From contig OZ241832.1 in assembly GCA_965202585.1 (NCBI GenBank), forward strand, positions 18,662,001 through 18,726,000: DNA of 64,000 nucleotides, written 5' to 3'. Source of the stretch: Thalia democratica. Taxonomy: Eukaryota. A model generated the notes under the pieces. That model saw nothing but the letters and a program-made list of their open reading frames with translations. It made no database searches and was not told the origin of the DNA. Positions 5,356-55,859 of the stretch are shown piece after piece (position 1 is the stretch's first letter; every line of letters starts with the position of its first letter). Both the position numbers and the translations under genes were made by a program.

Positions 5356-7400
5356 ATGGAGTTCACAAATGAAGAAAATTTGCTTCTTAATGAGGGTTAG
5401 TAAATTGTTATTATATTATCAAAAAAATTGTTTATTTTTTATGATTTTAATGCTAATTTATTATTTTGACAACTTAAAATTTGTTATAACAAGCAAAACT
5501 AAAGTTCTTTGGAAAATAGTAATTCAACTAATGTACTATAAAATTATGTGACAAAAAGTTTTATCTCGCTCATAAAGTATCTTGCATATAAAGTAATATA
5601 ACTACTGTACGAATTCGAGCTTATACATTTCTATTTATGCACAGGTGACATTTTTTATAAGATGTAATTTTTTACAGATGTTTCAAACCAAGCTAACCTA
5701 TTACCTATAAATCTTAAAGAAGTAATTGGTAAGTTACAAGTTGAAAGAAATTATTTCAAAACTCAAGTAAAAAACTTCAAAAAGAAAAGCAACAACTAGT
5801 TATTTCAAATAAAATTTTTTCAAAAAAAGTAAATTTTCTTGAAGAAAAACTTAAAACAACAATCACTTTGTAAGTTCTAGTGTTTGTATTTTAGTATTTA
5901 TTTAAATATAGTTCCAGTTTTAAGCGTTGATTTTTGTTTGTAGCAACCTCATTAGAATGTTTCTGCGTTAAAAGCTTAACAATTAACAACGAAGTAAAAA
6001 ATAAAATGTTTATTTAAAAAAAGGTCTGACAACAAAGTCACCACTGAAGTTAATTCAGATCAAGTTGAATCTTCACTGAATGATGTTGAACATGATAAAA
6101 ATATTTATAAATTAGTTAATAGTGTAAACTGTAAGTTACTTAACTTGTTTTTGTACTAATATTTAAAAATCTTTATTTAGAGATTAACTTTGATATATTT
6201 GTAAAGATGATTAATTACAAAATACTTTTGTACTAATTCTAATTGTTGAAAACTTTATATTAATAAAATTAAATGTATGTTTTTGGTCTGCTAAAGTTCA
6301 GTATAACTCCAAATTCTTAACTTTTATAGGTCTAAGTTCAACTAATCTTTTGAAAACTGGTCACTTAAGTGGGTCTTTTGAAAAAGTAAAATCTGAAGAA
6401 AATGTTTCATACAATGTGCATGAATCCCAAACTAACAATTTAAATAAAGGTAATATAAATATTTTAAAATTGTTATACAAAATGTTTACGCTAGTATTAT
6501 TTTAGATAATACCTGATCTTAAGCTTATGAAAAAATATATAAGTTAGTGGTCGAGTTAGTACCTTTCCCAAATTTACAGTTACTATTTTTTTTAAACAGT
6601 TACAAATTTTGTTATTAAAATAAACCTTAAATAAAGTATTTATTTTATTTATTACACTCATAGTTTTAGTAAATATTATTTTTTAAGATTTATTTCAGTG
6701 TATTCTTAATTTAATATAGAGCTTTGTGAAATTGAAAATAGATTAAATTGTAGTATTATTAGTGACACAAAAACTTGTTCAGTTATAAACTGATTCATAA
6801 CCTTAGTATAAACGGCATTTATATAAAACGAGATAATCATGCATTTTTTTTTAAATAACTTGTTACTTTTGTTTTAACACAAGCAATAATTTTTGTTTTA
6901 TTCATAATATATACGATATTGTTATTTTAACTGGATATGTATGATTTAAATCATATTGCAAATTTTTACAGAAAAACAATTTGGTTGTCAAGTATGTCAT
7001 AGAAAATACTCCACTAAAGTTTCTCTTTATCAACACATGAAAGTTCATGACAAATCGAAAAGTTTAAAGTGTGATGTTTGTTTGAAAGTTTTCTCTAGAA
7101 ATGCTGATCTCAAAAGACATTACAGAACACATACTGGAGAAAAACCTGTTGCTTGCCAAGTTTGTGATAAAAGATTTGCTCGAAAATCTGTATGAGTTGA
7201 ACATCAAACTACTCACATGGATATAAGAAATATCAAATATTCTATTTGCCCCGAAGGTAGATATTTCAAGACTAATAAACATTTATGTCAGCACATGAAA
7301 TTTCATTATGAACCAACATTTTCTTGCAGTCATTGAGGTCATAAAAGTTATACCTCAAGTGATTTAGTAAAGCATAGAAAACTCATCTTCAATTTTTTTA
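5356..7400 (+). pseudogene. Coiled-coil + 5x C2H2 zinc-finger gene A1, disabled
   Basis: Predicted exons 5356-5395, 5678-5869, 6024-6130, 6330-6449 and 6972-~7400 with GT-AG sites. Exon 2 is 192 bp versus 193 bp in the paralogs (frameshift). The finger exon has an in-frame TGA after FARKSV and a Cys-to-TGA change in the last finger. Confidence 0.82.
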
Positions 7401-8519
7401 ATTTTAATCTTTTGTTTCCTATTAGTGTCAAAAGTCTTAACATTTTAAAGAAAATAAGTTAAAATTTGTCTTTTTACAGTTATATTTATAAAAAAACATT
7501 CTAGTATATAAACAAACACATTGATTAGTTATTAAATATAATTACTTTTAGTGTTTGCTAATAGAAGTTCAAGCTAAAAGATTATATCAAGTCTTCTTTT
7601 AGTTAACTAACTGTATTTAAGTTGTAAAACAAAGTTCTAAAAACTTATTATTAGTAATGTAACTGTTTATTATTACTTAGTTTTTAAAATAATTTATTAA
7701 GATTTGATTAAGTTTTTTTTAGTTTTTTGTTATTTATTAAATACCTATTTCCGCTTTATAGTTAAGCTTTTTTTCATATATTTTAGAACTGTAAATAAGT
7801 ATTTTTGTTGAATTCAAAAAAAAAAAAACGATTTAAATAATTTTTTTATTATCTTTTTTGTTTAGTTTAGATATAAAAACTGTGAACCAGTTTTACTACA
7901 AAAAACCTTTTTTAAAATCATTATTTACTCATTGTTTATGACAGCTCTGCTTGTTACTAATTTTCTGTTGTTTAAATTAAGTAACTTAATTATTTACTAT
8001 TGTTTAAGTTTCAAATTTTATCGTATACTTACCAGATTTTTTAACTAAATAAATAGTTTTAAAAAAAAAAACCAAGTGAATTACTACATAAGTAATTCAT
8101 AGTTGAAAACTTGCTAAATAAAATATGGTTAGTCTTTTTTTATGTGTTTTAACTAAATAATATTTCAGTAATACTTATATTTCTACAACTTGCATAGAGC
8201 AATTTATTATAGTCCGTTGGTTTTAAGTTTATTTATAATGTTATATTAAACATTTTTTTTAAAATCACATATACTGTGTTATTTTATAAGCGTATATTTA
8301 TAAAAAAACTATTGTTGAAGGTTAAACTTGTTAATAAAACAACTAGAAAAACATTAGTATTTTTGAAAACATTTCTTAAAACTTCTAAATTCTAAAACCT
8401 CTAAACTTTAAAATTCTTAAAATGGGTTTTAAAAATTTAAATTATTAAAGTTTAAACTCTATCAGTAAATTTTAAAAGCCACTGGTAAACATATTTTTTA
8501 ATTGTTTAAATACTTACTG

Positions 8520-8830
8520 AAAAAGAACTTATTTTTCAAGTTTGTCATAAAAAAAGTTTTACCAGATATTCTCTTAATCAACACATGTAAGTTTAAGATA
8601 ATTTTATAAATTATAAAAGTGATGTTTGATTGAAAGTATTTTCATACAGATCATTGTTTACAAGACATCAGAAAACACTTACTGGAGAAAAACCTTTTGC
8701 TTGTCAAAGATGTGACAGAAAATTGGCCTTAAAAGTAACAAAGTTTAATCTCAAGCTACTCATAATATAGAAAAACGTTTTGCTTGTCAATCGTTTTGAT
8801 TGTCAAAATAATGTGATGGAACTTTTTCAG
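8520..8830 (+). pseudogene. Relic C2H2 zinc-finger exon D1
   Basis: Degenerate finger and linker text (SLNQHM, CDV, TGEKPFACQRCD) with frameshifts; paralog at about 28615-28930. Confidence 0.7.
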
Positions 8831-9328: not shown

Positions 9329-11377
9329 TATATGACCAAAATGTACCACCAAACGGCAAAGTTCATCAACAGGATGCGATGGAAAGTTTTCTTTCTCGAC
9401 AGAGACGAAGCAACCCAACCACCTGATGAATTTGCCAATATTTACAACAGCCGAAGATCAGCACCTGAATCAGACAAACTCAAAGCCTTTGAAAACGACC
9501 TATACGAAATCATCAGAAACCTCAAGTTCTCAAAATTTAGATCAAAGTACCAAAAGACTCTAAACAAAGACATAAAAAAGCTACTAAATAAGAAAATGAT
9601 TATAGTCTTTTCAGATAAAACATCAAACTTATACTATATGAATGCAAATAAATACAAGAAGCTAATGAAAAATAGCATAACTAGCGAATATTCAATTGAC
9701 AACGAAAATACCATTAATGACATTAACAACGAAGCAGCACAAATCCTAAGTAAACAAATGAGCTTAAAGAACAAAAAAGTTCCAAAATATGAAGTCAATG
9801 AAGCATTCCTTTCTATCAAAGACCATAAAGCGAACTTTCCACACGATATCAACTGTAGAATAATTAATTCATCTAAAACCCACTTAGGCAAACTGTCAAG
9901 AACCATCCTACAAAAACACATAACAACCATAAGAAAAAAATCCATGCTTAGCCAATGGAAAAACTCTGGAGAAGTGATAGATTGGTTCGAAAAAATCAAC
10001 AACAAAAACCACAAATGCTTCGTTAATTTTGACATTAAGAACTTCTACCCAACTATTAAAAGAAAGCACTTAATAGATGCAATCAACTTTTCCAACTCTT
10101 ATTCAAGGTTCACAGAGTTTGAGATAGAGACTATTTTACACACATGCAAATCAGTAATGTTTTACGATAATAATATGTGGAAAAAAACCAACTCCAATGA
10201 CAACTTCGACGTACCTATGGGATCATTTCACGGCGCCGAAATATGTGACCTTGTAGGTTTATACCTATTACACCATCTGTCTACGATTATAAACATTGAG
10301 TCAATTGGACTCTACAGAGATGATGGACTTGCCGTTATCAATCAAACAAATAAGAGTAATATTTGCAAAATAAAAAACAAAATTACAAAAAAACTAGCAG
10401 ACATAGGATTCGACATTACAATTAGTGCAGGTGAAACCTCCACCAACTTCTTAGACATACATTTAAACCTCCTAACTGATGATTATTGCCCATATGTAAA
10501 GCCAAACGCAAAGACCATCTATATTGACAAAGATTCTAACCATCCTAGAACAATTAAGAAAAATATACCAAAAATGATCGAAAATAGAATTTCAAAACTA
10601 ACAAAAAGCAAAGAATCATTTGATAACGCGAAACAAATCTACCAAAACGCTTTAAGCAAAAGCAACTTCCATCATAAGCTCGAATATAACCCAACAACTA
10701 ATAACAACAAAGCAAAAAACAGAAAAAGAAAATGTATATTTTACAACCCACCTTTCTGTGAATCAGTGAAAACCAAATTCGGAAACCTCTTTTTAAAACT
10801 GCTTGACAAGCACTTCCCACAATCAACAGAATTACACAAAATCTTCAATAGAAGTTCCACCAAGATATCATACTGCTGTTCCCCAAACATTAAAGCACTA
10901 ATAAGTGGACATAATAAGAAACTGCTAGAAAAACCACAAATAGAACCGAAGCTATGCAACTGCAGAAACAGAGAGCAATGTCCAGTAATGAATAAATGTA
11001 AATTAGAAAATGTAATATACGAAGCAATCGTCTCATCTGAGAAAAATAAGAGAATGTCATATATTGGATCCACCCGAAGAGCATTCAAAAACAGATTGTA
11101 CGAACATAGAGTATCATTTCCAAAACCAAACAAGAAGAAACCCGCCAACTGTACACAACTCGCCAACTACATGTGGAAATTATATGAAAAAGGCGAGAAA
11201 CCCACTATTGAATGGAAAATTCTCCGACAGACAAAAAGCAGATTTAAACCAAACTTCATGTGCTCGATATGTAACCTTGAAAGACTGTTTATAGCAAATG
11301 CTAACCAGAGAAAAATACTTAATAAAAGAAATGAACTAGTCACGCAATGCCCTCATTACCCTAAGGAATACTTTTAG
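9314..11377 (+). CDS. Penelope-like RT-GIY-YIG polyprotein, copy 1 (5'-truncated, with the first six codons supplied by the inversion junction)
   Basis: 687-aa ORF, identical from MTKMYHQT onward to copies 2 and 3. It lacks MTHSSDELILIDFKHSLKTIPITNKTLF. Confidence 0.9.
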   Translation: MWFTKYMTKMYHQTAKFINRMRWKVFFLDRDEATQPPDEFANIYNSRRSAPESDKLKAFENDLYEIIRNLKFSKFRSKYQKTLNKDIKKLLNKKMIIVFSDKTSNLYYMNANKYKKLMKNSITSEYSIDNENTINDINNEAAQILSKQMSLKNKKVPKYEVNEAFLSIKDHKANFPHDINCRIINSSKTHLGKLSRTILQKHITTIRKKSMLSQWKNSGEVIDWFEKINNKNHKCFVNFDIKNFYPTIKRKHLIDAINFSNSYSRFTEFEIETILHTCKSVMFYDNNMWKKTNSNDNFDVPMGSFHGAEICDLVGLYLLHHLSTIINIESIGLYRDDGLAVINQTNKSNICKIKNKITKKLADIGFDITISAGETSTNFLDIHLNLLTDDYCPYVKPNAKTIYIDKDSNHPRTIKKNIPKMIENRISKLTKSKESFDNAKQIYQNALSKSNFHHKLEYNPTTNNNKAKNRKRKCIFYNPPFCESVKTKFGNLFLKLLDKHFPQSTELHKIFNRSSTKISYCCSPNIKALISGHNKKLLEKPQIEPKLCNCRNREQCPVMNKCKLENVIYEAIVSSEKNKRMSYIGSTRRAFKNRLYEHRVSFPKPNKKKPANCTQLANYMWKLYEKGEKPTIEWKILRQTKSRFKPNFMCSICNLERLFIANANQRKILNKRNELVTQCPHYPKEYF

Positions 11378-11815
11378 TTTATTTTTTATCGCATTAACTT
11401 AGTTTATTTAGCTTATTTCATTCTATTTAATTATATTGTTACTTTGTATTTATGTTTGTATTGTATAAAGATTTTGTTTTAAAGTTACAACATTCCCGTA
11501 AAAAGACCATTTCTGTTTTCTAAAAATCCCCTACAAATCTTAGTATTTACATTTTTTCAAAATCCTAATATATTAAATGCTTAGTAAATAAATAAATTTT
11601 CTAAATATATAAAATCTATAGTTAATAAATTATTTAAACTAAACTTACCTATATTTCATTTTAATTTAACTTAACTTTAAAATTTAACTTTTGTAAACCA
11701 CATATTATTTAAAACTCATATTTCAAATGTAAATATTATTTTCATTTATATATTATGTGTGTATTTTTATTTTCCAATTCATCGCCCTGTATACTTTTGT
11801 TTTCAGCTTTTTTTA

Positions 11816-11854
11816 GCGTCTGATGAACTGCTCTGCAGGGAAACGGCGTAACGC
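11816..11854 (+). ncRNA. Minimal type I hammerhead ribozyme motif in the Penelope spacer
   Basis: GCGT-CTGATGA-A(CTGC TCT GCAG)G-GAAA-CG G CG-TA-ACGC. Stem I is GCGT/ACGC, stem II is CTGC/GCAG, stem III is the short ACG-G-CGT, and the predicted GUA cleavage is after 11850. Confidence 0.82.
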
Positions 11855-11982
11855 AATAAAAGTTTAACAATAAGTTTATATAATTCATATCTCCCACCAA
11901 GGATTGATAACTCTGTCTAGTTCTGTTTTTGTATCAAAAAAGCCTTTGCTCACTACTGGTTGGAGCACTCTTAAACTGCAGC

Positions 11983-14112
11983 ATGACCCACAGCAGCGAT
12001 GAATTAATTTTAATCGATTTTAAGCACTCCCTAAAAACCATCCCAATCACCAACAAGACTCTATTCATGACCAAAATGTACCACCAAACGGCAAAGTTCA
12101 TCAACAGGATGCGATGGAAAGTTTTCTTTCTCGACAGAGACGAAGCAACCCAACCACCTGATGAATTTGCCAATATTTACAACAGCCGAAGATCAGCACC
12201 TGAATCAGACAAACTCAAAGCCTTTGAAAACGACCTATACGAAATCATCAGAAACCTCAAGTTCTCAAAATTTAGATCAAAGTACCAAAAGACTCTAAAC
12301 AAAGACATAAAAAAGCTACTAAATAAGAAAATGATTATAGTCTTTTCAGATAAAACATCAAACTTATACTATATGAATGCAAATAAATACAAGAAGCTAA
12401 TGAAAAATAGCATAACTAGCGAATATTCAATTGACAACGAAAATACCATTAATGACATTAACAACGAAGCAGCACAAATCCTAAGTAAACAAATGAGCTT
12501 AAAGAACAAAAAAGTTCCAAAATATGAAGTCAATGAAGCATTCCTTTCTATCAAAGACCATAAAGCGAACTTTCCACACGATATCAACTGTAGAATAATT
12601 AATTCATCTAAAACCCACTTAGGCAAACTGTCAAGAACCATCCTACAAAAACACATAACAACCATAAGAAAAAAATCCATGCTTAGCCAATGGAAAAACT
12701 CTGGAGAAGTGATAGATTGGTTCGAAAAAATCAACAACAAAAACCACAAATGCTTCGTTAATTTTGACATTAAGAACTTCTACCCAACTATTAAAAGAAA
12801 GCACTTAATAGATGCAATCAACTTTTCCAACTCTTATTCAAGGTTCACAGAGTTTGAGATAGAGACTATTTTACACACATGCAAATCAGTAATGTTTTAC
12901 GATAATAATATGTGGAAAAAAACCAACTCCAATGACAACTTCGACGTACCTATGGGATCATTTCACGGCGCCGAAATATGTGACCTTGTAGGTTTATACC
13001 TATTACACCATCTGTCTACGATTATAAACATTGAGTCAATTGGACTCTACAGAGATGATGGACTTGCCGTTATCAATCAAACAAATAAGAGTAATATTTG
13101 CAAAATAAAAAACAAAATTACAAAAAAACTAGCAGACATAGGATTCGACATTACAATTAGTGCAGGTGAAACCTCCACCAACTTCTTAGACATACATTTA
13201 AACCTCCTAACTGATGATTATTGCCCATATGTAAAGCCAAACGCAAAGACCATCTATATTGACAAAGATTCTAACCATCCTAGAACAATTAAGAAAAATA
13301 TACCAAAAATGATCGAAAATAGAATTTCAAAACTAACAAAAAGCAAAGAATCATTTGATAACGCGAAACAAATCTACCAAAACGCTTTAAGCAAAAGCAA
13401 CTTCCATCATAAGCTCGAATATAACCCAACAACTAATAACAACAAAGCAAAAAACAGAAAAAGAAAATGTATATTTTACAACCCACCTTTCTGTGAATCA
13501 GTGAAAACCAAATTCGGAAACCTCTTTTTAAAACTGCTTGACAAGCACTTCCCACAATCAACAGAATTACACAAAATCTTCAATAGAAGTTCCACCAAGA
13601 TATCATACTGCTGTTCCCCAAACATTAAAGCACTAATAAGTGGACATAATAAGAAACTGCTAGAAAAACCACAAATAGAACCGAAGCTATGCAACTGCAG
13701 AAACAGAGAGCAATGTCCAGTAATGAATAAATGTAAATTAGAAAATGTAATATACGAAGCAATCGTCTCATCTGAGAAAAATAAGAGAATGTCATATATT
13801 GGATCCACCCGAAGAGCATTCAAAAACAGATTGTACGAACATAGAGTATCATTTCCAAAACCAAACAAGAAGAAACCCGCCAACTGTACACAACTCGCCA
13901 ACTACATGTGGAAATTATATGAAAAAGGCGAGAAACCCACTATTGAATGGAAAATTCTCCGACAGACAAAAAGCAGATTTAAACCAAACTTCATGTGCTC
14001 GATATGTAACCTTGAAAGACTGTTTATAGCAAATGCTAACCAGAGAAAAATACTTAATAAAAGAAATGAACTAGTCACGCAATGCCCTCATTACCCTAAG
14101 GAATACTTTTAG
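11983..14112 (+). CDS. Penelope-like RT-GIY-YIG polyprotein, copy 2 (709 aa from the first ATG)
   Basis: RT motifs FVNFDIKNFYPTI, VPMGSFHG, LYRDDGL and NFLDIHL; Cys-rich linker CNCRNREQCPVMNKC; GIY-YIG as VIYEAIV...SYIGSTRRAFKNRLYEH; C-terminal CSICNLE...LNKRNEL...CPH. The first in-frame ATG is 11983; the ORF-track start at 11929 is TTG. Confidence 0.95.
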   Translation: MTHSSDELILIDFKHSLKTIPITNKTLFMTKMYHQTAKFINRMRWKVFFLDRDEATQPPDEFANIYNSRRSAPESDKLKAFENDLYEIIRNLKFSKFRSKYQKTLNKDIKKLLNKKMIIVFSDKTSNLYYMNANKYKKLMKNSITSEYSIDNENTINDINNEAAQILSKQMSLKNKKVPKYEVNEAFLSIKDHKANFPHDINCRIINSSKTHLGKLSRTILQKHITTIRKKSMLSQWKNSGEVIDWFEKINNKNHKCFVNFDIKNFYPTIKRKHLIDAINFSNSYSRFTEFEIETILHTCKSVMFYDNNMWKKTNSNDNFDVPMGSFHGAEICDLVGLYLLHHLSTIINIESIGLYRDDGLAVINQTNKSNICKIKNKITKKLADIGFDITISAGETSTNFLDIHLNLLTDDYCPYVKPNAKTIYIDKDSNHPRTIKKNIPKMIENRISKLTKSKESFDNAKQIYQNALSKSNFHHKLEYNPTTNNNKAKNRKRKCIFYNPPFCESVKTKFGNLFLKLLDKHFPQSTELHKIFNRSSTKISYCCSPNIKALISGHNKKLLEKPQIEPKLCNCRNREQCPVMNKCKLENVIYEAIVSSEKNKRMSYIGSTRRAFKNRLYEHRVSFPKPNKKKPANCTQLANYMWKLYEKGEKPTIEWKILRQTKSRFKPNFMCSICNLERLFIANANQRKILNKRNELVTQCPHYPKEYF

Positions 14113-14550
14113 TTTATTTTTTATCGCATTAACTTAGTTTATTTAGCTTATTTCATTCTATTTAATTATATTGTTACTTTGTATTTATGTTTGTATTGTA
14201 TAAAGATTTTGTTTTAAAGTTACAACATTCCCGTAAAAAGACCATTTCTGTTTTCTAAAAATCCCCTACAAATCTTAGTATTTACATTTTTTCAAAATCC
14301 TAATATATTAAATGCTTAGTAAATAAATAAATTTTCTAAATATATAAAATCTATAGTTAATAAATTATTTAAACTAAACTTACCTATATTTCATTTTAAT
14401 TTAACTTAACTTTAAAATTTAACTTTTGTAAACCACATATTATTTAAAACTCATATTTCAAATGTAAATATTATTTTCATTTATATATTATGTGTGTATT
14501 TTTATTTTCCAATTCATCGCCCTGTATACTTTTGTTTTCAGCTTTTTTTA

Positions 14551-14589
14551 GCGTCTGATGAACTGCTCTGCAGGGAAACGGCGTAACGC
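14551..14589 (+). ncRNA. Minimal type I hammerhead ribozyme motif (unit 2/3 spacer)
   Basis: Identical to 11816-11854, offset by 2735 bp. Confidence 0.82.
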
Positions 14590-14717
14590 AATAAAAGTTT
14601 AACAATAAGTTTATATAATTCATATCTCCCACCAAGGATTGATAACTCTGTCTAGTTCTGTTTTTGTATCAAAAAAGCCTTTGCTCACTACTGGTTGGAG
14701 CACTCTTAAACTGCAGC

Positions 14718-16847
14718 ATGACCCACAGCAGCGATGAATTAATTTTAATCGATTTTAAGCACTCCCTAAAAACCATCCCAATCACCAACAAGACTCTATT
14801 CATGACCAAAATGTACCACCAAACGGCAAAGTTCATCAACAGGATGCGATGGAAAGTTTTCTTTCTCGACAGAGACGAAGCAACCCAACCACCTGATGAA
14901 TTTGCCAATATTTACAACAGCCGAAGATCAGCACCTGAATCAGACAAACTCAAAGCCTTTGAAAACGACCTATACGAAATCATCAGAAACCTCAAGTTCT
15001 CAAAATTTAGATCAAAGTACCAAAAGACTCTAAACAAAGACATAAAAAAGCTACTAAATAAGAAAATGATTATAGTCTTTTCAGATAAAACATCAAACTT
15101 ATACTATATGAATGCAAATAAATACAAGAAGCTAATGAAAAATAGCATAACTAGCGAATATTCAATTGACAACGAAAATACCATTAATGACATTAACAAC
15201 GAAGCAGCACAAATCTTAAGTAAACAAATGAGCTTAAAGAACAAAAAAGTTCCAAAATATGAAGTCAATGAAGCATTCCTTTCTATCAAAGACCATAAAG
15301 CGAACTTTCCACACGATATCAACTGTAGAATAATTAATTCATCTAAAACCCACTTAGGCAAACTGTCAAGAACCATCCTACAAAAACACATAACAACCAT
15401 AAGAAAAAAATCCATGCTTAGCCAATGGAAAAACTCTGGAGAAGTGATAGATTGGTTCGAAAAAATCAACAACAAAAACCACAAATGCTTCGTTAATTTT
15501 GACATTAAGAACTTCTACCCAACTATTAAAAGAAAGCACTTAATAGATGCAATCAACTTTTCCAACTCTTATTCAAGGTTCACAGAGTTTGAGATAGAGA
15601 CTATTTTACACACATGCAAATCAGTAATGTTTTACGATAATAATATGTGGAAAAAAACCAACTCCAATGACAACTTCGACGTACCTATGGGATCATTTCA
15701 CGGCGCCGAAATATGTGACCTTGTAGGTTTATACCTATTACACCATCTGTCTACGATTATAAACATTGAGTCAATTGGACTCTACAGAGATGATGGACTT
15801 GCCGTTATCAATCAAACAAATAAGAGTAATATTTGCAAAATAAAAAACAAAATTACAAAAAAACTAGCAGACATAGGATTCGACATTACAATTAGTGCAG
15901 GTGAAACCTCCACCAATTTCTTAGACATACATTTAAACCTCCTAACTGATGATTATTGCCCATATGTAAAGCCAAACGCAAAGACCATCTATATTGACAA
16001 AGATTCTAACCATCCTAGAACAATTAAGAAAAATATACCAAAAATGATCGAAAATAGAATTTCAAAACTAACAAAAAGCAAAGAATCATTTGATAACGCG
16101 AAACAAATCTACCAAAACGCTTTAAGCAAAAGCAACTTCCATCATAAGCTCGAATATAACCCAACAACTAATAACAACAAAGCAAAAAACAGAAAAAGAA
16201 AATGTATATTTTACAACCCACCTTTCTGTGAATCAGTGAAAACCAAATTCGGAAACCTCTTTTTAAAACTGCTTGACAAGCACTTCCCACAATCAACAGA
16301 ATTACACAAAATCTTCAATAGAAGTTCCACCAAGATATCATACTGCTGTTCCCCAAACATTAAAGCACTAATAAGTGGACATAATAAGAAACTGCTAGAA
16401 AAACCACAAATAGAACCGAAGCTATGCAACTGCAGAAACAGAGAGCAATGTCCAGTAATGAATAAATGTAAATTAGAAAATGTAATATACGAAGCAATCG
16501 TCTCATCTGAGAAAAATAAGAGAATGTCATATATTGGATCCACCCGAAGAGCATTCAAAAACAGATTGTACGAACATAGAGTATCATTTCCAAAACCAAA
16601 CAAGAAGAAACCCGCCAACTGTACACAACTCGCCAACTACATGTGGAAATTATATGAAAAAGGCGAGAAACCCACTATTGAATGGAAAATTCTCCGACAG
16701 ACAAAAAGCAGATTTAAACCAAACTTCATGTGCTCGATATGTAACCTTGAAAGACTGTTTATAGCAAATGCTAACCAGAGAAAAATACTTAATAAAAGAA
16801 ATGAACTAGTCACGCAATGCCCTCATTACCCTAAGGAATACTTTTAG
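14718..16847 (+). CDS. Penelope-like RT-GIY-YIG polyprotein, copy 3 (709 aa from the first ATG)
   Basis: Same protein as copy 2. Two synonymous C>T differences were seen, at 15216 and 15917. Confidence 0.95.
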   Translation: MTHSSDELILIDFKHSLKTIPITNKTLFMTKMYHQTAKFINRMRWKVFFLDRDEATQPPDEFANIYNSRRSAPESDKLKAFENDLYEIIRNLKFSKFRSKYQKTLNKDIKKLLNKKMIIVFSDKTSNLYYMNANKYKKLMKNSITSEYSIDNENTINDINNEAAQILSKQMSLKNKKVPKYEVNEAFLSIKDHKANFPHDINCRIINSSKTHLGKLSRTILQKHITTIRKKSMLSQWKNSGEVIDWFEKINNKNHKCFVNFDIKNFYPTIKRKHLIDAINFSNSYSRFTEFEIETILHTCKSVMFYDNNMWKKTNSNDNFDVPMGSFHGAEICDLVGLYLLHHLSTIINIESIGLYRDDGLAVINQTNKSNICKIKNKITKKLADIGFDITISAGETSTNFLDIHLNLLTDDYCPYVKPNAKTIYIDKDSNHPRTIKKNIPKMIENRISKLTKSKESFDNAKQIYQNALSKSNFHHKLEYNPTTNNNKAKNRKRKCIFYNPPFCESVKTKFGNLFLKLLDKHFPQSTELHKIFNRSSTKISYCCSPNIKALISGHNKKLLEKPQIEPKLCNCRNREQCPVMNKCKLENVIYEAIVSSEKNKRMSYIGSTRRAFKNRLYEHRVSFPKPNKKKPANCTQLANYMWKLYEKGEKPTIEWKILRQTKSRFKPNFMCSICNLERLFIANANQRKILNKRNELVTQCPHYPKEYF

Positions 16848-17285
16848 TTTATTTTTTATCGCATTAACTTAGTTTATTTAGCTTATTTCATTCTATTTAA
16901 TTATATTGTTACTTTGTATTTATGTTTGTATTGTATAAAGATTTTGTTTTAAAGTTACAACATTCCCGTAAAAAGACCATTTCTGTTTTCTAAAAATCCC
17001 CTACAAATCTTAGTATTTACATTTTTTCAAAATCCTAATATATTAAATGCTTAGTAAATAAATAAATTTTCTAAATATATAAAATCTATAGTTAATAAAT
17101 TATTTAAACTAAACTTACCTATATTTCATTTTAATTTAACTTAACTTTAAAATTTAACTTTTGTAAACCACATATTATTTAAAACTCATATTTCAAATGT
17201 AAATATTATTTTCATTTATATATTATGTGTGTATTTTTATTTTCCAATTCATCGCCCTGTATACTTTTGTTTTCAGCTTTTTTTA

Positions 17286-18764: not shown

Positions 18765-20861
18765 ATGGAATTTATAAACAATCTAGATAAAGGCAAGTTT
18801 CCTTATACAAGTTTTTATTTCTAATTTGTCATATATAAAACTGATTAAAGCTGTAATGTTATTATAGTAGTTGCTTTTTATATTTATTACGATTTATGAA
18901 AAAGTTAGTTTTAAAACAGCAGCTATTGTTTTAATAAAGTTTTAAAGTTTTAGTTAAATGTTATAATAGTTTTGAATTTATTATAATTAGAAAAAGATGT
19001 GTAGTCTTTTGATAAACTTAATCAATGTAAAAACAAAAAGTTTTAGAACAACTATTGATTAATTATTTTATAAATTACTTATAATTTTTATAGATGTTTC
19101 TAACAAAGCTAATTTACTACTTTCCAATTTGAAAGAGATATTTGAGAAATTGCAATATGAAAAAAACTACTTCAAAACTCAAGTAGAAAAACTGCACTAT
19201 GAGAAGAATCAATTAGCTATTTCAAATAAAAGTCTTTCAAAAAAAGTTGATTCACTTCAAAAAGAGTTAAAAAGAAAAACTTTTCCGTTAGTATATATTG
19301 TTTATTGAACCATTTAACAGCGCTCAAACATTTTGGTCTAAGGACTTGGTGTACTAAGAAACCTTTCGGTTATCAAGTAGTACACCGCAATATAATTATT
19401 TTATAAATAAATTTATGATCATGAGTACATGTAATTCTTAGAACATTAATATGTGTATTTTAAACTAAAAACAATTAGGTTTTTCTTACGTTATGAAAAA
19501 TAAAGTTCAATTATAAAATGATTCAATATATATTTTTAGTGAGAATAAATACAATAACCAAGTTAAATCAGATAAAACGGAGTTTTTATCTACTAATGTT
19601 GAGTTTGTTGATATTTTTGACAAACCTGTTATTTCTCCAAGCAGTAAGTTGTAAACTAATAAATTAAATGAGATATTTAATTTTATTTAAACTAAATTAT
19701 TAGTGTCAATTGTTTGTTTAAGTAACTATTTTTACAGTTTATTTTTTTTTTGTTACAGAAATAATCCTCGGAAGGACTGACAAAATTTTAACAAAATAAT
19801 ATTAATAAAAATTTTAATTGTGTTTATAAACTCCTAATTATTATAAACCTATCTTTAGTTATAAAAGTAAATTTAATAAAACATTCAGTAATACTGATTG
19901 GTCTTAAAATCTTGAAAAACAATTTACTTCGCAGAATATACAAAACAACAAAACCAAAATAGAAAATTGATGAAATCTAGTGACCAACTTGGAAGCTCTT
20001 CTCAATCTAATAGTAGTGAGTATGTTTCTAAAACGATCACTGTTTAACAACTGTTTTCTTAGTTTATAAAGTATATATTTTAAAACATTTTTGATCACTA
20101 AAGTATACCAAATTATTTAGTATATTTTAAATTACTAGTTTTAGTTATAAGTTGAAATTTTGTTCCTTCCATTTTATTCTACATTGTGTTAATTATATTA
20201 CTACTAAACAAATTTTGAATAATTAAACGACTTTAATTTTATATTACTGATTGTTTATTAAACTTTTAAATTAGAACTATATCTATAAACCATTATTATT
20301 TTTTAAATATAAAAGAAAAAATTTTTTTAAGAACTTAAATTTCTAATGCATTCTTAGAATTTAGATTAAAACGATAGTTATAACTTATCAGAACTTGATA
20401 CTTTTTTTGCTATGTTAGTGTTGATTTTTTATTTCAATACAACAGAAAAACATTTTCAAGTAGGTCATGATCACCTTTATAATGAGAATTTGCTGAACAA
20501 ACAAATTAATGAACAAATAAATCGAAAAGTTTTAAATGCGATGTTTGTTTAAAAGTATTTCCAAGCAAATCAAAGTTAACACAACATTATAGAGTTCATA
20601 CTGGAGAAAAACCATTTACTTGTCAAATTTGTGATAAAAAATTTGCACGAAAATCTCACTTAGTTCAACATCAAGCTACTCACAGTGATGTTAAAAAATT
20701 TAAATGTTCTATTTGTCCAGAAGGTAGATTTTTTAAAACAAAATATCAATTAATCACATGGTTTATCATTATGAACCTAAATATTCTTGCAGTCATTGTG
20801 ATCATAAAAGCTATAGAAAGTGTGATTTATCAAAGCATGAAAAACTCATGCACAAAATTAA
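18765..20861 (+). pseudogene. Coiled-coil + 4x C2H2 gene B1: finger exon frameshifted, short finger-less isoform still open
   Basis: Exons 18765-18792 (GC donor), 19094-19286, 19540-19643, 19935-20015 and 20446-20861. The last exon has 1-bp and 4-bp deletions relative to B2. An alternative terminal exon at 19759-19799 gives an open 121-aa ORF. Confidence 0.78.
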
Positions 20862-24006: not shown

Positions 24007-24500
24007 GAAAACCAATTTAAGTTTTAAACAAGTCAAAATGAATATTCTAGTGAAAAAATGCTGATCAAATAAACGATAGTTCAAAATTTTCAAATGTTTT
24101 GAGTTTGAAAGTGTTTCGGATCAAATCATTGCTTACAAGACATTACAGAGCACATACTAGAGAAAAAAATTTTGCTTGTCAAATATGTGACAGTAAGTTT
24201 GCACAAAAATTTACATTAGTTCGACATCAAGCTACTACTCATACCGGGGAAAAACCTTTTGCTTGTCAAGTTTGTGATAAAATGTTTTCATTGTAAAGTA
24301 GTTTAGTTCGACATCAAACCATTTGCTTGTCAAATCTGTGACAAAACATTTGCCAAAAAGTATACATTATTTAAACACCACGCTACTCATACAGGAAACA
24401 AAAAAAATTGCTTGTCAATTTTGTGACAAAAAATTTGCACAAAAAAATTACATTAGTTCGGTATCAAGCTACTCATACATGAGAAAAACCATTTTGCTGG
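24007..24500 (+). pseudogene. Degenerate C2H2 zinc-finger exon C1 (about 5 broken fingers)
   Basis: LTRHYRAHTREKNFACQICDSKFAQKFTLVRHQAT and HTGEKPFACQVCDKMF are followed by stops and frameshifts (ORFs 24099..24296 and 24323..24505). Confidence 0.8.
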
Positions 24501-25424
24501 TTTAAAAAAACATTGGTTTTATGCCATTTATAAATAACTTATTTTTTTTGAAGGAAAACGTTTTGAAAGATAATAAGTTTTATTTTAATATGAATGCAGC
24601 AAAATATTTCAAAACTGGGAATGTTAACAAACTATTGTATATTCAGATACAATTAATGTTTTTATTTTTATTTTTTCAAGTATATTTAAATACTAAAAGA
24701 AGTATTATAAGTCTACAGTTTAATATTATTCTTTTAAGACACTTTATTTTTTATCTATTTAAAACAAATTAAGTATTTGTGTAAAGGTTATAAGTTTTGT
24801 AAGTAAAATTTATAAGAAAAAAAATTGAGATACGTTTCATTAAAAAATCAAGTTTATTTATATACTATTTTTTTTTTGGAGAATATGTACTACTTTGTAA
24901 AAAATTTTAGTGTTAGTTTTATTGTTTAGTTAAAATAACAAATTAACTGTTCGTTTGTATGTAACTTTTTACTTTATCTTCGTATATTTAGATTGTGTTC
25001 TTTATGTTGACATATGTTAAATTTTGTAAGCATATTTAAAAAAAAATCCTTAAACTTGGTTCTTGTTAACATGTTAATTATAAAGGCCTAAATATTTTTT
25101 AAGGTGTTTAGCTAAAAAAATTAGTTTTAGTTTTGTGTATATATAAAGTTATACAGTTAGCTTATTTTTAACATTCAAGTTTTCTACTTAAAAAACTTTA
25201 AAATTTAAAATTGTTAAAATTTTTAATTAATTTTATAAATTTCTAAAGTAGTAATAATTAAGTTTTACATATTATTAATATCTCATTTTGTTACTTTTTC
25301 TTTGTTTTTTTTTTAAATTAAAGTAGTTGTTCATTTTTGTTTAAATTTTAGATTTTGTTTATACTTGGGTATTTTAATAATAATTTAATTAAATTTTAAA
25401 AAACTACAACTAATTTGTCATATA

Positions 25425-27499
25425 ATGGAAATCACAAGTGATTGTTTGCCATTTAATGAAGGTTAGTAGATTTTTTTTTTGTTAAAAAAAAAAAAATATT
25501 TTTGATGTTTTTGTACATGATTTTTTAGATTCATAACTTAAGTTTAAATTTGCCATAACAATCAATGTTGAAATTTTTAGTATTAAAAAAGTAATTTAAC
25601 AAATGTCTTATTGAAATCTATAACATAAAATTTTAACTGGTTATAAAAGTAATATGATTACTTTAGCAATTAAATCGTTTACATACGTATTTTGGCACGG
25701 GTAACAAATTTCATTTACTGTACTTATTTACAGATGTTTCAAACCAAGCAAATGTATTACTTGTTAATCTAAAAGAAGTAGTTGGTAAGTTACAAGCTGA
25801 AAGAAATTACTTCAAAACTCAAGTAGAAAAACTTAAAATTGAAAAGCAAAAAGTAATAGTTTCATATAAAAATTTGTCAAAACGATTAGTTTGTTTTGAA
25901 GAAAAACTAAAAACGATAATTGCTTTGTAAGTTCTAGTGTTTGTATTTTAATAAATATTTAAACATAGTTTCAGTTTTTAATATTAGTTATTTTTTGTAG
26001 CAACCTAATTAGAATGATTCTGTATTTTAACTTAACAACAAACAAATAAGAAGAAAATCAAAGTAATTATTTTAGCAAAAGGTCTGGCAACGAAGTAAAA
26101 AATAAAATATTAATTTAAAAAAAGTTCTGACAACGAAGTCACCACTGAAGTTAATTCATATCAAGTTGAATCTTCACTGAATGATGTTGAACATGATAAA
26201 AATATTTATAAATTAGTTAATAGTGTAAACTGTAAGCTACTTAGCTTGTTTTTGTACTAATATTTAAAAAGCTTTATTTAGAGATTAACTTTGATATATT
26301 TGTAAAAATGATTAATTACAAAATACTTTTGAAGCAACTCTAGTTTTTAAAAACTATACATTAATAAAATAAAATATATCTTTTTCGTCTATTTTTATTC
26401 AGTATAACTCAAAAATCTTAACTTTTAAATGTTTAAGTTCAACTAATCTTGTAAAGACTGGTTACTTAAGTGGATCTTTTGAAAAAGTAAAAACTGAAGA
26501 AAATGTTTCATACAATTTGCATAAATCCCAAACTAACAATTCAAATAAAGGTAGTATAATTTTTGCAAAGTTGTTATACAATAGATTTTTGCTAAGATAT
26601 TTTAGATAATACCTGATCTTAAGCTTATGAAAAAATCTCTAAGTTAGTGGTCGATTTAGTACTTTTCCCAAATTTACAGTTACTATTTTTTGTTGTTAAA
26701 ATGAACCTTAAATAAAGTTTTTATTTTGGCTATTATAATCATAGTTTTAGTAAAATTATTTTTTTCAAGATTTATTTCTTATTATGAATTCTTAATATTG
26801 TGTATTCTTAATTTTATATAGAGTTTTGTAATTTTGAAATTAGATTAAATTGTAGTATTATAATCGACACAAAAAATTGTTTGGTTATCGAATGTTTCAT
26901 GACCTTAATATAAACGGCATTTATATAAAACGAGATAATCATGCATTTTTTTTAAATAATTTGTTATTTTTGTTTTAACACAAAGAATAGTTTTGTGTTA
27001 TCCATAAGATATACGATACTGTTATTTTAACTAGGTATGTATGTTTTAAATTATATTCCAAATTTTTGCAGAAAAACAATTTGATTGTCAAGTATGTGAT
27101 AGAAAATACTCCACCAAAGTTTCTCTTTATCAACACATGAAAGTTCATGACGAATCGAAAAGTTTAAAGTGTGATGTTTGTTTGAAATTTTTCTCTAGAA
27201 ATGCTGATCTCAAAAGACATTACAGAACACATACTGGAGAAAAACCTTTTGCTTGTCAAGTTTGTGATAAAAGATTTGCTCGAAAATCTACATTAGTTGA
27301 ACATCAAACTACTCACAGTGATGTAAGAAAAATCAAATGTTCTATTTGTCCCGAAGGTATATATTTCAAAACAAAAAAAGATTTAAATCGACACATGGTT
27401 TTTCATTATGAACCAAAATTTTCTTGCAGTCATTGTGATCATAAAAGTTATACCTCAAGTGGTTTAGCAAAGCATAAAAAAACTCATGTTAAGAAATAA
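25425..27499 (+). CDS. Coiled-coil + 5x C2H2 zinc-finger gene A2 (spliced; open if exon 4 is skipped)
   Basis: Exons 25425-25461, 25734-25926, 26125-26231 and 27072-27499 sum to 765 nt (254 aa). The finger exon is intact with a TGEKPF linker. The exon-4 homolog (26431-26550) has lost its AG, and the exon-3 acceptor (AAG) is weak. Confidence 0.62.
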
Positions 27500-28614
27500 C
27501 TTAGAATTTATTATTCTAATCTATTGTTTACTTATTAGTGTCAAAAGTCTTAACTTTATAATGAAAATATGTTAAAATTTGTCTATTTACAGTTACATTA
27601 ATAAAACAAACATTCTAGTATATAAACAAACACATTGATTAGTTATTAAATATAATTACTTTTAGTCTTTGCTAATAGAAGTTCAAGCTAAAAGATTATA
27701 TCAAGTCTTCTTTTAGTTAACTTACTGTATTAAAGTTGTAAAACAAAGTTCTAAAAGCTTATTATTAATAATGTAACTGTTTATTATTACTTAGTTTTTA
27801 AAATAATTCATTAACATTAGAATAAGTTTTTTTTTATTTTTTGTTATTTATTTAATACCTATTTCCGCTTTATAGTTAAGCTTTTTTTCATGTATTTTAG
27901 AACTATAAATAAGTTTTTTTGTTGAAAAAAAAAAAACGATTTAACTAAATTTGTTATTATCTTTTTTGTTTATTTTAAGATTAAAAACTATAAAGCAGTT
28001 TTACTACAAAAAACCTTTTTTAAAATCATTATTTATGACAGCTCTGCTTGTTACTAATTTTCTGTTGACTAAATTGAGTAACTTGATTATTTACTATTGT
28101 TTAAGCTTCAAATTTTATCGTATACTTCTAAGATTTTTTAACTAAATAAATAGTTTTTGAAAAAAAATCAAGTGAATTACTACATAATGCAATTCATAGT
28201 TGAAAACTTGCTAAATAAAATATCGTTAGTATTTTTTATATGTTTTAACTCAATAATATTTCAGTAATACTTATATTTCTACAATTTATTATAATCTGTT
28301 GGTTTTAAGTTTATTTATAATGTTATATTAAACATTTTATTTAAAATCACATATATTGTGTTATTTTATAAGCGTATATTTATTTAAAAAAATTTTTGTT
28401 GAAGGTTACACTTCTTAATAAAACCACTAAAAAAACATGAGTATTTTTTAAAACTTTTCTTAAAACTTCTAAATTCTCAAACCTCTAAATTTTTAAATTC
28501 TTAAAACATGTTTGTTATTATTTTAAATTGAATTTTAATTATTAAACTTTAAACTCTATCGGTAAATTTTAAAAGCCACAGGTAAACATATTTTTTAATT
28601 GTTTAAATACTTAC

Positions 28615-28930
28615 TGAACAAGAACTTATTTTTCAAGTTTGTCATAAAAAATGTTTTACCAGATATTCTCTTAATCAACACATGAAAGTTCAAGATGATT
28701 CTAAAAGTTGTAAGTGTGATGTTTGTTTGAAAATGTTTTAATACATATTGTTGTATAAAAGACATTACAGAACACGTACTGGAGGAAAATATTTTGCTTG
28801 TCAAAGATGTGACAGAACATTGGGCTTAAAAGTAACTAAGTTTATCCTCAAGCTACTCATATTAAAGAAAAACGTTTTACTTGTCAATCGTTTTGATTGT
28901 CAAAATTATGTGATGGAACTTTTTCAGTAA
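28615..28930 (+). pseudogene. Relic C2H2 zinc-finger exon D2
   Basis: QVCHKK...SLNQHMKV...CDVCLKMF...RHYRTRTGGKYFACQRCD, broken by a stop; paralog of 8520-8830. Confidence 0.7.
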
Positions 28931-30561
28931 ATCTTACTTATTTCGACATCAAGCCAGCTACAAGATTGTTAGAAATTTTAGAAGTTTTATTTGTTTAGAT
29001 TATTTAATTAAAGGTAGTTCAAGTCAACATATGATCTTCAATAATGGACACAAATTTTCTAAAAGACTGCTCTCACATATTTTATTTAAATTTAACTTAA
29101 GTATTTAAGTCAATGTGTTTGCAACTTTTGTTTTAAAGTAAAAACATATAATTTTCCAGTTTTTAAAGACCTAATAGTTAAATTTTAATTATAATCCCAA
29201 TAAGTTTTTTTTAATTATAACCATTTAATTATTTCATAAAATCAAATATTTTGACTTAAAAAAACTTTAATAATTATGCTAAATCTGTCATAGGAAAAAA
29301 TATTGCTAAGTAATTTTTGTGACATTATGTTCATTTTTATTCTAAAGCTGAAGTAAGTTAATTTGTTATTTCTATTAAAATAAATATTTTTGACCCATAA
29401 CAAAAATCTAGATAAATTAATAAAGTTTTAAAAATTGTTATTTTCATTTTTTTAAACATTATTTGTTGTTATTGTTATTTGATTCGTACAAAGGAGATAT
29501 AAATTTTGAATATAACTCAGCAGCATAAATTGTTTTTTTTTAGAATTTTCAAATAACAATTTGTTTATAATTTCAAATAAAAAAAAAGGATTTTTTTAAT
29601 AGTTTTTAATTTTGAAGTATTTAGTAAATTATTCTATCCATATTTATAGTCAAATATTTCTTTATCCATAAAAAAAACATTACAGAATTAGTCTAATATT
29701 TTTTTTTTTTTGAAGCTTGATAGATTTTATCTTTTTGTACAAGACATTGTTCAGCTCAAAATTAAATTGTAGATATTTTAAGATAATTTAGAAGCAGAAG
29801 TTAAATTTTTCCTGTATTTTGGAAACATCCTTGATTTAAAATCTTAATAAAAAAACTCATAAAAAATTATGAGTTTTGAAAACTTGGTAAGTTGTTCTGC
29901 ATTTATGTTATTAATTGGTCTGAATGAGAAAATTGTATAATTATTGTTATGTTATGACACAAGAACTTTAAAGTTAGTTTAACGGGATTAGTAAAAATTA
30001 CTATTAAATCATTTTCACTTAATATTACTTGTACTTCATATAAAGAGTTGTTTGAGTTTTTTATTGATGACTTTTAAATTACTTAGTAAGTTTGTTTAAA
30101 AAGTTTGAACGTAACAATTAATTTTGTATTTTTTTTATTAGTCTGTTTTCTTAAACAGAAGAACATTCAACCAAGTAGTAAATAAAAGCTTGTTAAGTAA
30201 TAAAGTTTTAAAGCATTTTTCTAATAAAAAAATGTTCATGTATTTTACTAATTCCAAGGCAATTTTATAAAATGTAAAATCAATTTGAGTTAGTAGTTTT
30301 TTTTTTTATCTCAAAAAATTTGTTTCATTTTATTAATTGAATTTTTAACTTGTTTTAGTTAAACTGTTGTAGTAAATTTTATAGTGTAAAACTGCACGAC
30401 AAATAATGTATAGGTATTAGGTTTTAAGTTAAAAATATAAAACAATATAGTTTTTTTTTAATTTGTAAGTAATTTGTTTTGTTGTTTAAGTTAATTTTAA
30501 AAACTCGTTTTTAACAGGTTTATAGTTTAAATATAGTATATCTTCAACTGTCATCATCATT

Positions 30562-32631
30562 ATGGAATTCGTAAATGAAGGCAAGTTTCCTTATACAAGT
30601 TTTTATTTTTAATTTGTCATATATGAAGTTGATTAAAGCTGTAATGTTATTATAGTAGTTGCTTTTTACATTTATTATGATTTATGAAAAAGTTAGTTAT
30701 AAAACGGCAGCTGTTGTTAAAAATTAAAAATATTTATGTAATTTTTTGAATTCAATGTATTTAGAAAAAGCTGTGTTGTCTTTCGATAAATTTAATCAAT
30801 GTAAAAACAAAAAGTTTTAGAACAGCTAGTGATTTATTATTTTATAAATTACTTTTAATTTTTGTAGATGTTTCTAACAAAGCTAAATTACTACTTTCGA
30901 ATTTGAAAGAGATATTTGAGAAATTGCAATATGAAAAAAACTACTTTAAAACTCAAGTAGAAAAACTACACTATGAAAAGAATCAATTAGCTATTTCAAA
31001 TAAAAGTCTTTCAAAAAAAGTTGATTCACTTCAAAAAGAGTTACAAAGAAAAACTTTTCCGTTAGTATATATTGTTTATTGAACGATTAAAAGCGCTCAA
31101 AAATTTTGGTCTAAGGACTTGGTGTAAAAAGGAACCTTTCGGTTATCGAGTAGTACACCACAATATATTTGTTTTATAAATAAATTTATGATCATGAGTA
31201 CATTTAATTCTTAGAACATTAATGTGTGTATTTTAAACTAAAAACAATTAAGTTTTTCTTACGTTCTGAAAAATAAAGTTCAATTATAAAATGATTCAAT
31301 ATATTTTTAGTGAGAATAAATACAATAACCAAGTTAAACCAGATAAAACGGAGTTGTTATCTACTAATGTTGAGTTTGTTGATATTTTTGATAAACCTGT
31401 TATTTCTCCAAGCAGTAAGTTGTAAACTAATAAATTAAATGAGATATTTAATTTATTCAAACTTAATTATTAGTGTCAATTGTTTGGTTAAGTAATTATT
31501 TTTACAGTTTTTTTTTTACAGAACTAATTTTCGGAAGAACTGATAAAATTTTAACAAAATAATATTAATAAAAATTTTAAATGTGTTTGTAAACTCCTAA
31601 TTTTTTTAAACCATTCTTTAATTATAAAAGTAAAATAAAAAAAACATTCAGTAATACTGCATGGTCTTAAAAACTTGAAAAACAATTTACTTCTCAGAAT
31701 ATACAAAACAACAAAACCAAAATAGAAAATTGAAGAAATCTAGTGACCAACTTGGAAGCTCTTCTCAATCTAGTAGTAGTGAGTATATTTCTTAAACAAT
31801 AACTGTTTAACAACTGTTTTGAAAGTTTATAAAGTATATATTTTTTAACATTCGTGATCACTAAAGTAAACCAATTTGTTTAGTATATTTTAAATTACTA
31901 GTTTTAGTTATAAGTTGAAATTTTGCATATTCTTTTTTATACTACATTGTGTTAATTATATTACTACTAAACAAGTTTTGAATAATTAAACGACTTTAAT
32001 TTTATATTACCGATTGTTTATTTAACTTTGAAATTAGAACTATATCTATAAACAGTTATTATTTTTTGAATATAAAAGAACATTTTTTTTTAAGAATTCT
32101 AAATTTTTAATACATTCTTAGAATTTAGATTAAAACGATAGTTATAACTTATCAGAACTTGATATTTTTTTTGCTATGTAAGTGTTGACTTTTTATTTCA
32201 ATACTACAGAAAAACATCTTCAAGCAAGTCATGATCACCTTTATAATGAGAATTTGCTGAACCAACAAATGAATGTACAAAAAAAATCGAAAAGTTTTAA
32301 ATGCGATGTTTGTTTAAAAGTATTTCCAAGAAAATCAAACTTAACACAACATTACAGAGTTCATACTGGAGAAAAACCATTTGCTTGTCAAATTTGTGAT
32401 AAAAAATTTGCACGAAAATCTCACTTAGTTCAACATCAAGCTACTCACAGTGATTTAAAAAATTTTAAATGTTCTATTTGTCCAGAAGGTAGATTTTTTA
32501 AAACAAAAGATCAATTAAGTACTCACATGGTTTATCATTATGAACCTAAATATTCTTGCAGTCATTGCGATCATAAAAGCTATAGAAAGTGTGATTTATC
32601 AAAGCATGAAAAAACTCATGCACAAAATTAA
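30562..32631 (+). CDS. Coiled-coil + 4x C2H2 zinc-finger gene B2 (apparently intact, 272 aa)
   Basis: Exons 30562-30580 (GC donor), 30868-31060, 31311-31414, 31698-31778 and 32210-32631 sum to 819 nt with no internal stop. It has four complete C2H2 fingers and an AATAAA shortly after the stop. Confidence 0.8.
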
Positions 32632-55855: not shown

Positions 55856-55859
55856 TTTT

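Follow-up and report, generated by a model that had tools for sequence, protein, structure and literature searches.

Background

The described systems closest to the locus reported here are families of C2H2 zinc-finger genes with a characteristic N-terminal module. In the ZAD-C2H2 genes of arthropods the module precedes the C2H2 array, and the family is marked by lineage-specific tandem expansion and fast diversification (PMC7913770); the FiNZ genes of cyprinid fish number about 700 in zebrafish, where their knock-down de-represses transposons (PMC10547256). Here we analyse a 64-kb stretch of the genome of the pelagic tunicate Thalia democratica (802-Mb assembly GCA_965202585.1; contig OZ241832.1, here C8, positions 18662001-18726000; local G+C ~22%), hereafter the window, in which four genes or gene remnants, called A1, B1, A2 and B2, each place a 193-bp exon, hereafter the zipper exon, upstream of a single exon holding all C2H2 fingers. 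We conclude that they probably belong to a tunicate-restricted family of small dimeric C2H2 transcription-factor genes with several hundred members. In their gene plan, a short first exon (MEF...) is followed by the zipper exon, two acidic/Ser-rich linker exons and one finger exon; the zipper would pair two proteins, so that two finger arrays would read DNA together; tandem duplication and later change at contact residues would supply new DNA specificities; and losing copies would decay, as A1, B1 and nearby finger relics have done.

Like ZAD-C2H2 proteins, the predicted products carry an N-terminal pairing module (deduced here from heptads) before a C2H2 array, in a family expanded in tandem within one lineage. 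ZAD, however, is a zinc-coordinating four-Cys fold, whereas the tunicate module is predicted to be a Cys-free single helix and has no zf-AD match; ZAD pairing is largely homodimer-specific, whereas the tunicate zipper interface is near-identical across subfamilies, and promiscuous heterodimers, if formed, would differ from the largely homodimeric ZADs. In the KRAB-ZNF genes of tetrapods (PF01352), too, a dedicated exon encodes the module and a single last exon carries every finger, and they share large tandem clusters, birth and death, and a conserved scaffold with variable DNA-contact residues; KRAB, in contrast, is a co-repressor docking domain that recruits TRIM28/SETDB1, with shown transposon silencing, and the tunicate family is without a KRAB box and has a zipper. 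FiNZ genes resemble the present ones in bearing a private unnamed N-terminal sequence on a single exon upstream of the finger exon, in hundreds of copies confined to one lineage; compared by published description (PMC10547256), the FiNZ sequence is Glu-rich and 28 residues long in a gene of two coding exons, and the tunicate one has 64 residues with heptads in a gene of five. In the SCAN-ZNF proteins of vertebrates (PF02023), a leucine-rich module at the N terminus lets family members pair with themselves and with one another, but SCAN is multi-helix, whereas the tunicate module is predicted to be one continuous helix and has no Pfam match. In bZIP proteins (PF00170), too, a Leu zipper of comparable length runs in heptads, places Asn and Lys at a positions and forms g-e' salt bridges, but the tunicate zipper is without a basic region, the stretch preceding it is neutral or acidic, and DNA would be read by C2H2 fingers ~110 residues downstream.

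Judged by its sequence, the family belongs to none of KRAB, ZAD and SCAN, because their defining domains were looked for in a Pfam scan and were not found, and it is not a bZIP family, because no basic region precedes the zipper; FiNZ is set apart by description. The family appears to be like ZAD and SCAN in its putative N-terminal pairing module and like KRAB and FiNZ in architecture, scale and selection pattern. An earlier note on this DNA had likened the locus to KRAB and ZAD zinc-finger clusters, an analogy that is strengthened in exon architecture, tandem amplification, lineage restriction and the difference in selection between scaffold and contact residues.

A putative leucine zipper on the 193-bp exon

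In the window, a six-frame scan and a profile search locate the zipper exon exactly 4 times, each time on the + strand. The three intact copies (A2, B1 and B2, each 193 bp) have profile E-values of 5e-32 to 8e-35, and the frameshifted A1 copy, at 192 bp, gives two split profile matches (E 1e-17 and 1e-10). An AG acceptor lies immediately 5' of each copy, the donor is GTAAGT or GTTAGT, and the single exon with all C2H2 fingers follows 1.3-1.4 kb downstream. Zipper and finger exons are the sole pieces conserved at the protein level between the diverged A and B types.

The consensus module consists of 64 residues (DVSN..NYFKTQVEKL) and has no conserved Cys. Heptad analysis of 49 stop-free zipper-exon copies in a single register found the lowest variability, 0.37 bits, at the d positions (L13, L20, F27, L34, L41, L48, L55), followed by 0.74 bits at the a positions (I17, K24, V31, K38, N45, V52, L59), with b and f the most variable (1.76 and 1.44 bits). 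The seven d positions read L/L/F/L/L/L/L, so that Leu recurs every seven residues through at least four heptads, and the Asn at a, N45, is at least 90% conserved. The g-e' pairs E23-K28 and K51-E56 are attractive, with zero repulsive pairs. AlphaFold2, run on a 26-sequence alignment, predicts one helix spanning residues 2-63 (predicted local distance difference test score, pLDDT, 97). No basic region was found in exon 1 (MEF.., acidic) or in zipper-exon residues 1-12 (DVSNQANLLL.N).

Under established coiled-coil rules, an in-register parallel dimer is favoured by beta-branched a residues, by Leu in the d positions and by an Asn buried at an a position. Because the zipper exon combines these features, its pattern favours a seven-heptad leucine zipper without a basic region that would pair as a parallel dimer. 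The interface (a, d, e and g) is nearly identical across subfamilies, and promiscuous heterodimers of paralogues are therefore possible.

Named domains were sought in the zipper exon without success: no Pfam family reaches its cut-off (best NET2A, 22 bits vs 33; bZIP_1 E=0.71), PDB sequences hold no relative other than generic coiled coils, and look-alikes in the ESM Atlas are likewise generic coiled coils only. A Pfam scan of the exon translations (E<=1) found no KRAB (PF01352), zf-AD (PF07776) or SCAN (PF02023) domain, and it recognised no repression motif in any exon. The statement that the exon matches no named domain is thus borne out by Pfam and PDB, and of the two roles proposed for it, effector or dimerisation module, the seven-heptad pattern with Asn at a favours dimerisation, which has good support.

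The finger exon and selection on the family

Five C2H2 fingers align across the family, and the finger exon usually holds four or five, up to seven; PF00096 scores above cut-off in both A2 (E=1.8e-17) and B2 (E=3.8e-17), in keeping with tandem C-x2-C-x12-H-x3-H fingers joined by TGEKP-type linkers. The fourth finger, atypical in that its Cys-His spacer is longer (CSICPEGRFFKTK), constitutes a private hallmark of the family. Its DNA motif occurs 974 times in the genome, vs 0 for the control; in 6/11 sampled array copies a zipper exon lies <=2.7 kb upstream, and the other sampled copies are either fragments with fingers alone or incomplete copies packed close together.

Pairwise ratios of non-synonymous to synonymous substitution rates (dN/dS) for the zipper exon have a median of 0.31 and a sum ratio of 0.30, with 1018/1018 pairs below 1. 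Finger codons that do not contact DNA give 0.26, and the contact codons (-1, 2, 3 and 6) give ~1.0, such that DNA-contact residues change about four-fold faster. Among 15 intact finger exons, entropy averages 2.02 bits at contact positions and 0.80 at the remaining finger positions (Mann-Whitney p=4e-7). This combination of a conserved scaffold and changing contacts is the classic signature of a family shifting its DNA specificity. Neutral dN/dS, which the earlier note had named, together with a lack of spliced transcripts, as counting against its reading, is found neither in the zipper exon (0.30) nor in the finger scaffold (0.26).

A dispersed repeat of ~0.8-1 kb, whose copies are 88-92% identical, carries a 35-residue remnant of fingers 3-4 (..HQANHSD..FKCCICPEGRFFKT) at sites on C1 (7.63, 52.20, 56.62 and 82.64 Mb), C2 (10.22 and 20.52 Mb) and C4 (16.43 Mb). 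The ~2.9 kb fetched upstream of the repeat contains no zipper exon, and it therefore seems that part of the finger exon was captured by a mobile element.

Family size and genomic arrangement

A whole-genome search with the B2 zipper exon returned 830 first-look candidates; the best 150 of these were scored, all with E<=2.3e-12, and 140/150 are stop-free. For the DNA motif of FKTQVEKL the genome gives 387 hits, vs 12 for the reversed control; together with the profile E-values in the window, this puts the exon well outside chance expectation. The copy counts are lower bounds, as the best candidates only were scored, and the family comprises at least about 390 copies, possibly about 800. Arrays of zipper exons occupy C4 (22, 58-70, 73-75 and 94 Mb), C6 (28 and 78-79 Mb) and C8 (5.4 and 18.15-19.03 Mb), with a few copies on C7, C9 and one unplaced contig; the array that includes the window holds at least 36 zipper exons in ~0.9 Mb.

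The AG/GT borders and 193-bp length are kept in 27 of the 30 genome copies fetched, and an MEF... first exon was seen in the right orientation at 11 of 15 loci examined. Within the fetched flank, 37 of 50 zipper exons are followed on the same strand by a family finger exon, and at many loci the finger exon of the previous gene lies just upstream, indicating head-to-tail arrays. In a tree built from 44 zipper exons the array label changes 11 times, compared with ~27 times after label shuffling; array labels cluster on the tree, and amplification has therefore been local.

Just upstream of the window (C8:18652001-18662000) lie two zipper exons on the opposite strand, one of which has an intact five-finger exon 1.2 kb downstream; the array therefore flips orientation at the left edge of the window. 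Along 21.9-22.96 Mb of C4, family-type finger exons follow one another very densely, at intervals of 4-10 kb, and a second partial finger exon often lies 0.5-2.5 kb upstream; a zipper exon accompanies 3/8 of those sampled.

Relatives among public proteins and metagenomes

The zipper-exon profile was compared with 1.84 billion representative proteins, a library that includes annotated ascidian proteomes, as shown by matches of a mitochondrial HSP70 exon to Clavelina, Phallusia, Ciona, Botryllus and Styela (84-87%). These are the best named matches of the HSP70 exon, ahead of insects at 81%, and unnamed marine sequences reach 90-97%; the exon places the host among the tunicates, and with the Tara Oceans matches described below the host is probably pelagic. 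The zipper-exon profile yielded 100 matches at E<=1e-3, 69 of them at E<=1e-10, and no relative of the zipper exon in the annotated ascidian proteomes. About 90 of the 100 are short single-exon open reading frames (ORFs) of 46-112 residues, and all of those looked up come from short ENA or Logan marine metagenome contigs, including Tara Oceans PRJEB4352; the few long matches, taken together, align piecemeal over many stretches, as generic coiled coils do. Read-through of genomic DNA, not splicing, accounts for the metagenome ORFs. Candidates for spliced products among the public proteins (e.g. P0032, P0093) were rejected, the residues after the zipper being intron read-through and not exon 3.

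At least two marine metagenome contigs also bear a family finger exon, and the 120 best protein matches of the finger exon are all unnamed metagenome ORFs, with up to 78% identity. Compared with the genome, Tara contigs reached best DNA identities of 87% and 76% among the best 40 of 1500-2000 candidates. Literature searches turned up no family combining a zipper with C2H2 fingers in tunicates or thaliaceans. The zipper module appears to be restricted to the host lineage, although short coiled coils are hard to trace far.

Gene models in the window

The shared anatomy that the earlier note had described for four genes (a very short first exon, a 193-bp exon, linkers and one finger exon) was recovered by profile search, splice borders and exon-by-exon reading (Table 1). 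Its picture of four tandem genes needs amending: all four are present, but A1 and B1 are pseudogenes and the set is a duplicated pair. Self-comparison of the window aligns segment 4809-9135 with 24922-29234 at 82.5% and segment 17410-22756 with 29219-34594 at 88%; the four genes are one two-gene A+B unit, tandemly duplicated. Identity between B1 and B2 is 96-97.5% in exons vs 91.5% in introns, and between A1 and A2 it is 83-97% vs 81%. The note's minimum of three finger relics between the genes agrees with the three located here, and the zipper exon is not peculiar to this locus, since profile and motif searches find several hundred copies, and 37 of the 50 whose flanks were fetched are linked to finger exons.

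Table 1. Family genes, relics and inserted elements in the window (positions count from its first nucleotide)
Feature	Position	Strand	Description
A2 exon 1	25425..25461	+	37 nt; MEITSDCLPFNE + 1 nt; donor GTTAGT
A2 exon 2	25734..25926	+	193-bp exon of the putative leucine zipper, intact; V41, Y45 vs consensus L41, N45
A2 exon 3	26125..26224	+	Acidic/Ser-rich linker with family motif; 3' border less certain
A2 exon 4	26403..26550	+	Linker; 5' border less certain
A2 exon 5	27072..27499	+	Five C2H2 fingers + stop, intact
B2 exon 1	30562..30580	+	19 nt; MEFVNE + 1 nt; GC donor GCAAGT
B2 exon 2	30868..31060	+	193-bp exon of the putative leucine zipper, intact
B2 exon 3	31311..31414	+	Linker, ENKYNNQV...VEFVDIFDKPVISPS
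B2 exon 4	31698..31778	+	Linker, KL.K.SDQ.GSSS motif
B2 exon 5	32210..32631	+	Four C2H2 fingers (finger 1 lost) + stop, intact
A1 pseudogene	5356..7395	+	Exons 5356-5395, 5678-5869, 6024-6123, 6302-6449, 6972-7395
B1 pseudogene	18765..20861	+	Exons 18765-18792, 19094-19286, 19540-19643, 19935-20015, 20446-20861
Zipper exon copies	A1 5678-5869, B1 19094-19286, A2 25734-25926, B2 30868-31060	+	Located by profile
Finger-exon relic	8630..8740	+	Downstream of A1
Finger-exon relics	24072..24457	+	Between B1 and A2
Finger-exon relic	28619..29066	+	Downstream of A2; paralogue of 8630-8740
Penelope-like units	9332-17417	+	Three in tandem, 99.9% identical, between A1 and B1; self-comparison

A2 (five exons, 906 nt, 301 codons + stop) and B2 (five exons, 819 nt, 272 codons + stop) are intact and frame-consistent; phases were checked exon by exon, and for the A type the placing of the exon 3/4 borders is provisional. 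All acceptors in these two models are AG, and the donors are GT except for GC at exon 1 of the B type. In addition to the 1-bp deletion that breaks the frame of its zipper exon, A1 has a finger exon that is interrupted by two in-frame TGA codons and in which a finger Cys has become Tyr. Exons 1-4 of B1 are open, and its finger exon has suffered three frameshifting deletions (1, 4 and 1 bp). The short first exons of the window genes (MEF...) measure 19-40 nt, that of B2 being 9 nt shorter than that of B1; the GC donor GCAAGT follows exon 1 in both B genes (18793-18798, 30581-30586), where other members have GTAAGT.

Two linker coding islands between the zipper and finger exons were revealed by comparison with other family members. 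The linkers had been described as low-complexity; two are indeed present, but they are not merely low-complexity, as their motifs are conserved family-wide. The exon-3 motif NQVEF..D.E.V..IDKPSTSQNS recurs in essentially every family copy examined, and the exon-4 motif KL.KF.DQVGSSS in about half. The exon-3 motif sets a hydrophobic core between acidic and Ser residues (VEIVKIID, VEFVDIFD, then DKPSTSQNS; e.g. 31311-31414), an arrangement that we take to resemble SUMO-interaction motifs.

The Penelope-like insertion is not part of the gene family and sits in the older-looking A+B copy, the one that holds both pseudogenes. Its head-to-tail units each contain a 727-residue ORF with a GIY-YIG-like motif at its end (YIGSTRRAFKNRLYEH); Pfam did not recognise a reverse transcriptase in this ORF and returned weak unrelated matches only. 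Further right, 55855-57601 is a third copy (80% identical) of the B-gene 5' flank (17413-19043, 29055-30817); no zipper exon follows it, and it looks like a partial duplicate of the upstream region of the unit. The window also contains three paralogous segments, 73-75% identical (39391-40178, 41154-41930, 46789-47424), and two inverted-repeat pairs, 49020-50088 vs 53535-54600 (86.6% over ~1.07 kb) and 1874-2199 vs 4472-4806 (89% over ~0.33 kb).

Alternative explanations

Several points weigh against a functional, dimeric family. A lone helix, even at pLDDT 97, does not give an oligomeric state, and the core of A2 differs from the consensus at V41 and Y45. The pairs behind the dN/dS values are not independent of one another, and apparent conservation could be inflated by gene conversion within arrays; the contact-codon ratio is ~1 and not >1, at which relaxed constraint is indistinguishable from positive selection. 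Roughly half of the sampled copies are broken. Splicing and expression are deduced from conservation, phases and canonical splice sites, and the protein library contains no spliced zipper-finger product, although it includes proteins derived from transcripts of a close relative, whose mortalin is 97% identical.

KRAB docks onto the coiled coil of TRIM28, and the tunicate helix might, although we think this rather unlikely, be an effector handle that docks on the coiled coil of a co-repressor and so silences the sites bound by the fingers, for example in young transposons. The near-invariance of the zipper surface over hundreds of paralogues would be expected for one common partner, a very young Penelope-like insertion is present at the locus, and the architecture and selection pattern match those of KRAB and FiNZ genes, which repress transposons (PMC10547256). 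Nevertheless, Asn at a, attractive g-e' pairs and zero repulsive ones give the a/d/e/g positions the look of a homodimeric zipper, and the Pfam scan recognised no repression motif in any exon. Self-pairing and partner binding are not mutually exclusive. It is quite improbable, in our estimate, that the arrays are mostly inert, that is, segmentally amplified and decaying copies whose similarity is maintained by gene conversion and of which few, if any, would be functional. Of the four genes in the window, A1 and B1 are pseudogenes, three relics lie among the genes, the finger exon is broken or missing in about half of the sampled copies, and no spliced product turned up in the public protein sets searched; yet gene conversion or recent copying would not give the contrast between dN/dS of 0.26-0.30 (scaffold, zipper) and ~1 (contact codons), 140 of the best 150 zipper exons are open despite lying in DNA of 78% A+T, splice sites and phases are conserved, and a and d positions are conserved more than b and f. 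Least probable of all, and very unlikely, is a unit carried by a mobile element, with copy number due to transposition rather than duplication of host genes. The ~1-kb dispersed repeat on C1, C2 and C4 does bear a 35-residue finger remnant, but it holds this fragment only, without the zipper exon, and complete units stand head to tail in a few arrays (C4, C6, C8) instead of being dispersed, copies group by array on the tree, the gene has four introns, and the duplication in the window is a plain tandem segment; we rejected a transposon-borne unit as the main explanation on the head-to-tail arrays, the four introns and the tandem duplication.

Implications

The tunicate-restricted family of putatively dimeric zinc-finger genes is an undescribed counterpart of the KRAB, SCAN, ZAD and FiNZ families. 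By analogy with these, a role in transposon control is plausible. It is conceivable, though unlikely, that a pelagic tunicate has independently built a transposon-surveillance repertoire of several hundred zinc-finger proteins in which any two members can pair through the zipper and recognition is combinatorial; if true, targets would be read by combinatorial pairs of finger arrays and not by one protein per target, an arrangement undescribed for KRAB, ZAD, SCAN or FiNZ. The module would be the simplest possible, a plain leucine zipper whose pairing rules are predictable and can be tested with peptides, and the family allows a direct test of whether pairing and DNA specificities evolve together.

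Large and rapidly evolving zinc-finger families, each with a private N-terminal module, had separate origins in tetrapods (KRAB), vertebrates (SCAN), arthropods (ZAD) and carp-like fish (FiNZ), and are central to ideas on genome defence and regulatory innovation; the tunicate family would be a further independent case, in a group close to the vertebrates. It also suggests that marine genomes without annotation contain transcription-factor genes in their hundreds that protein databases do not show.

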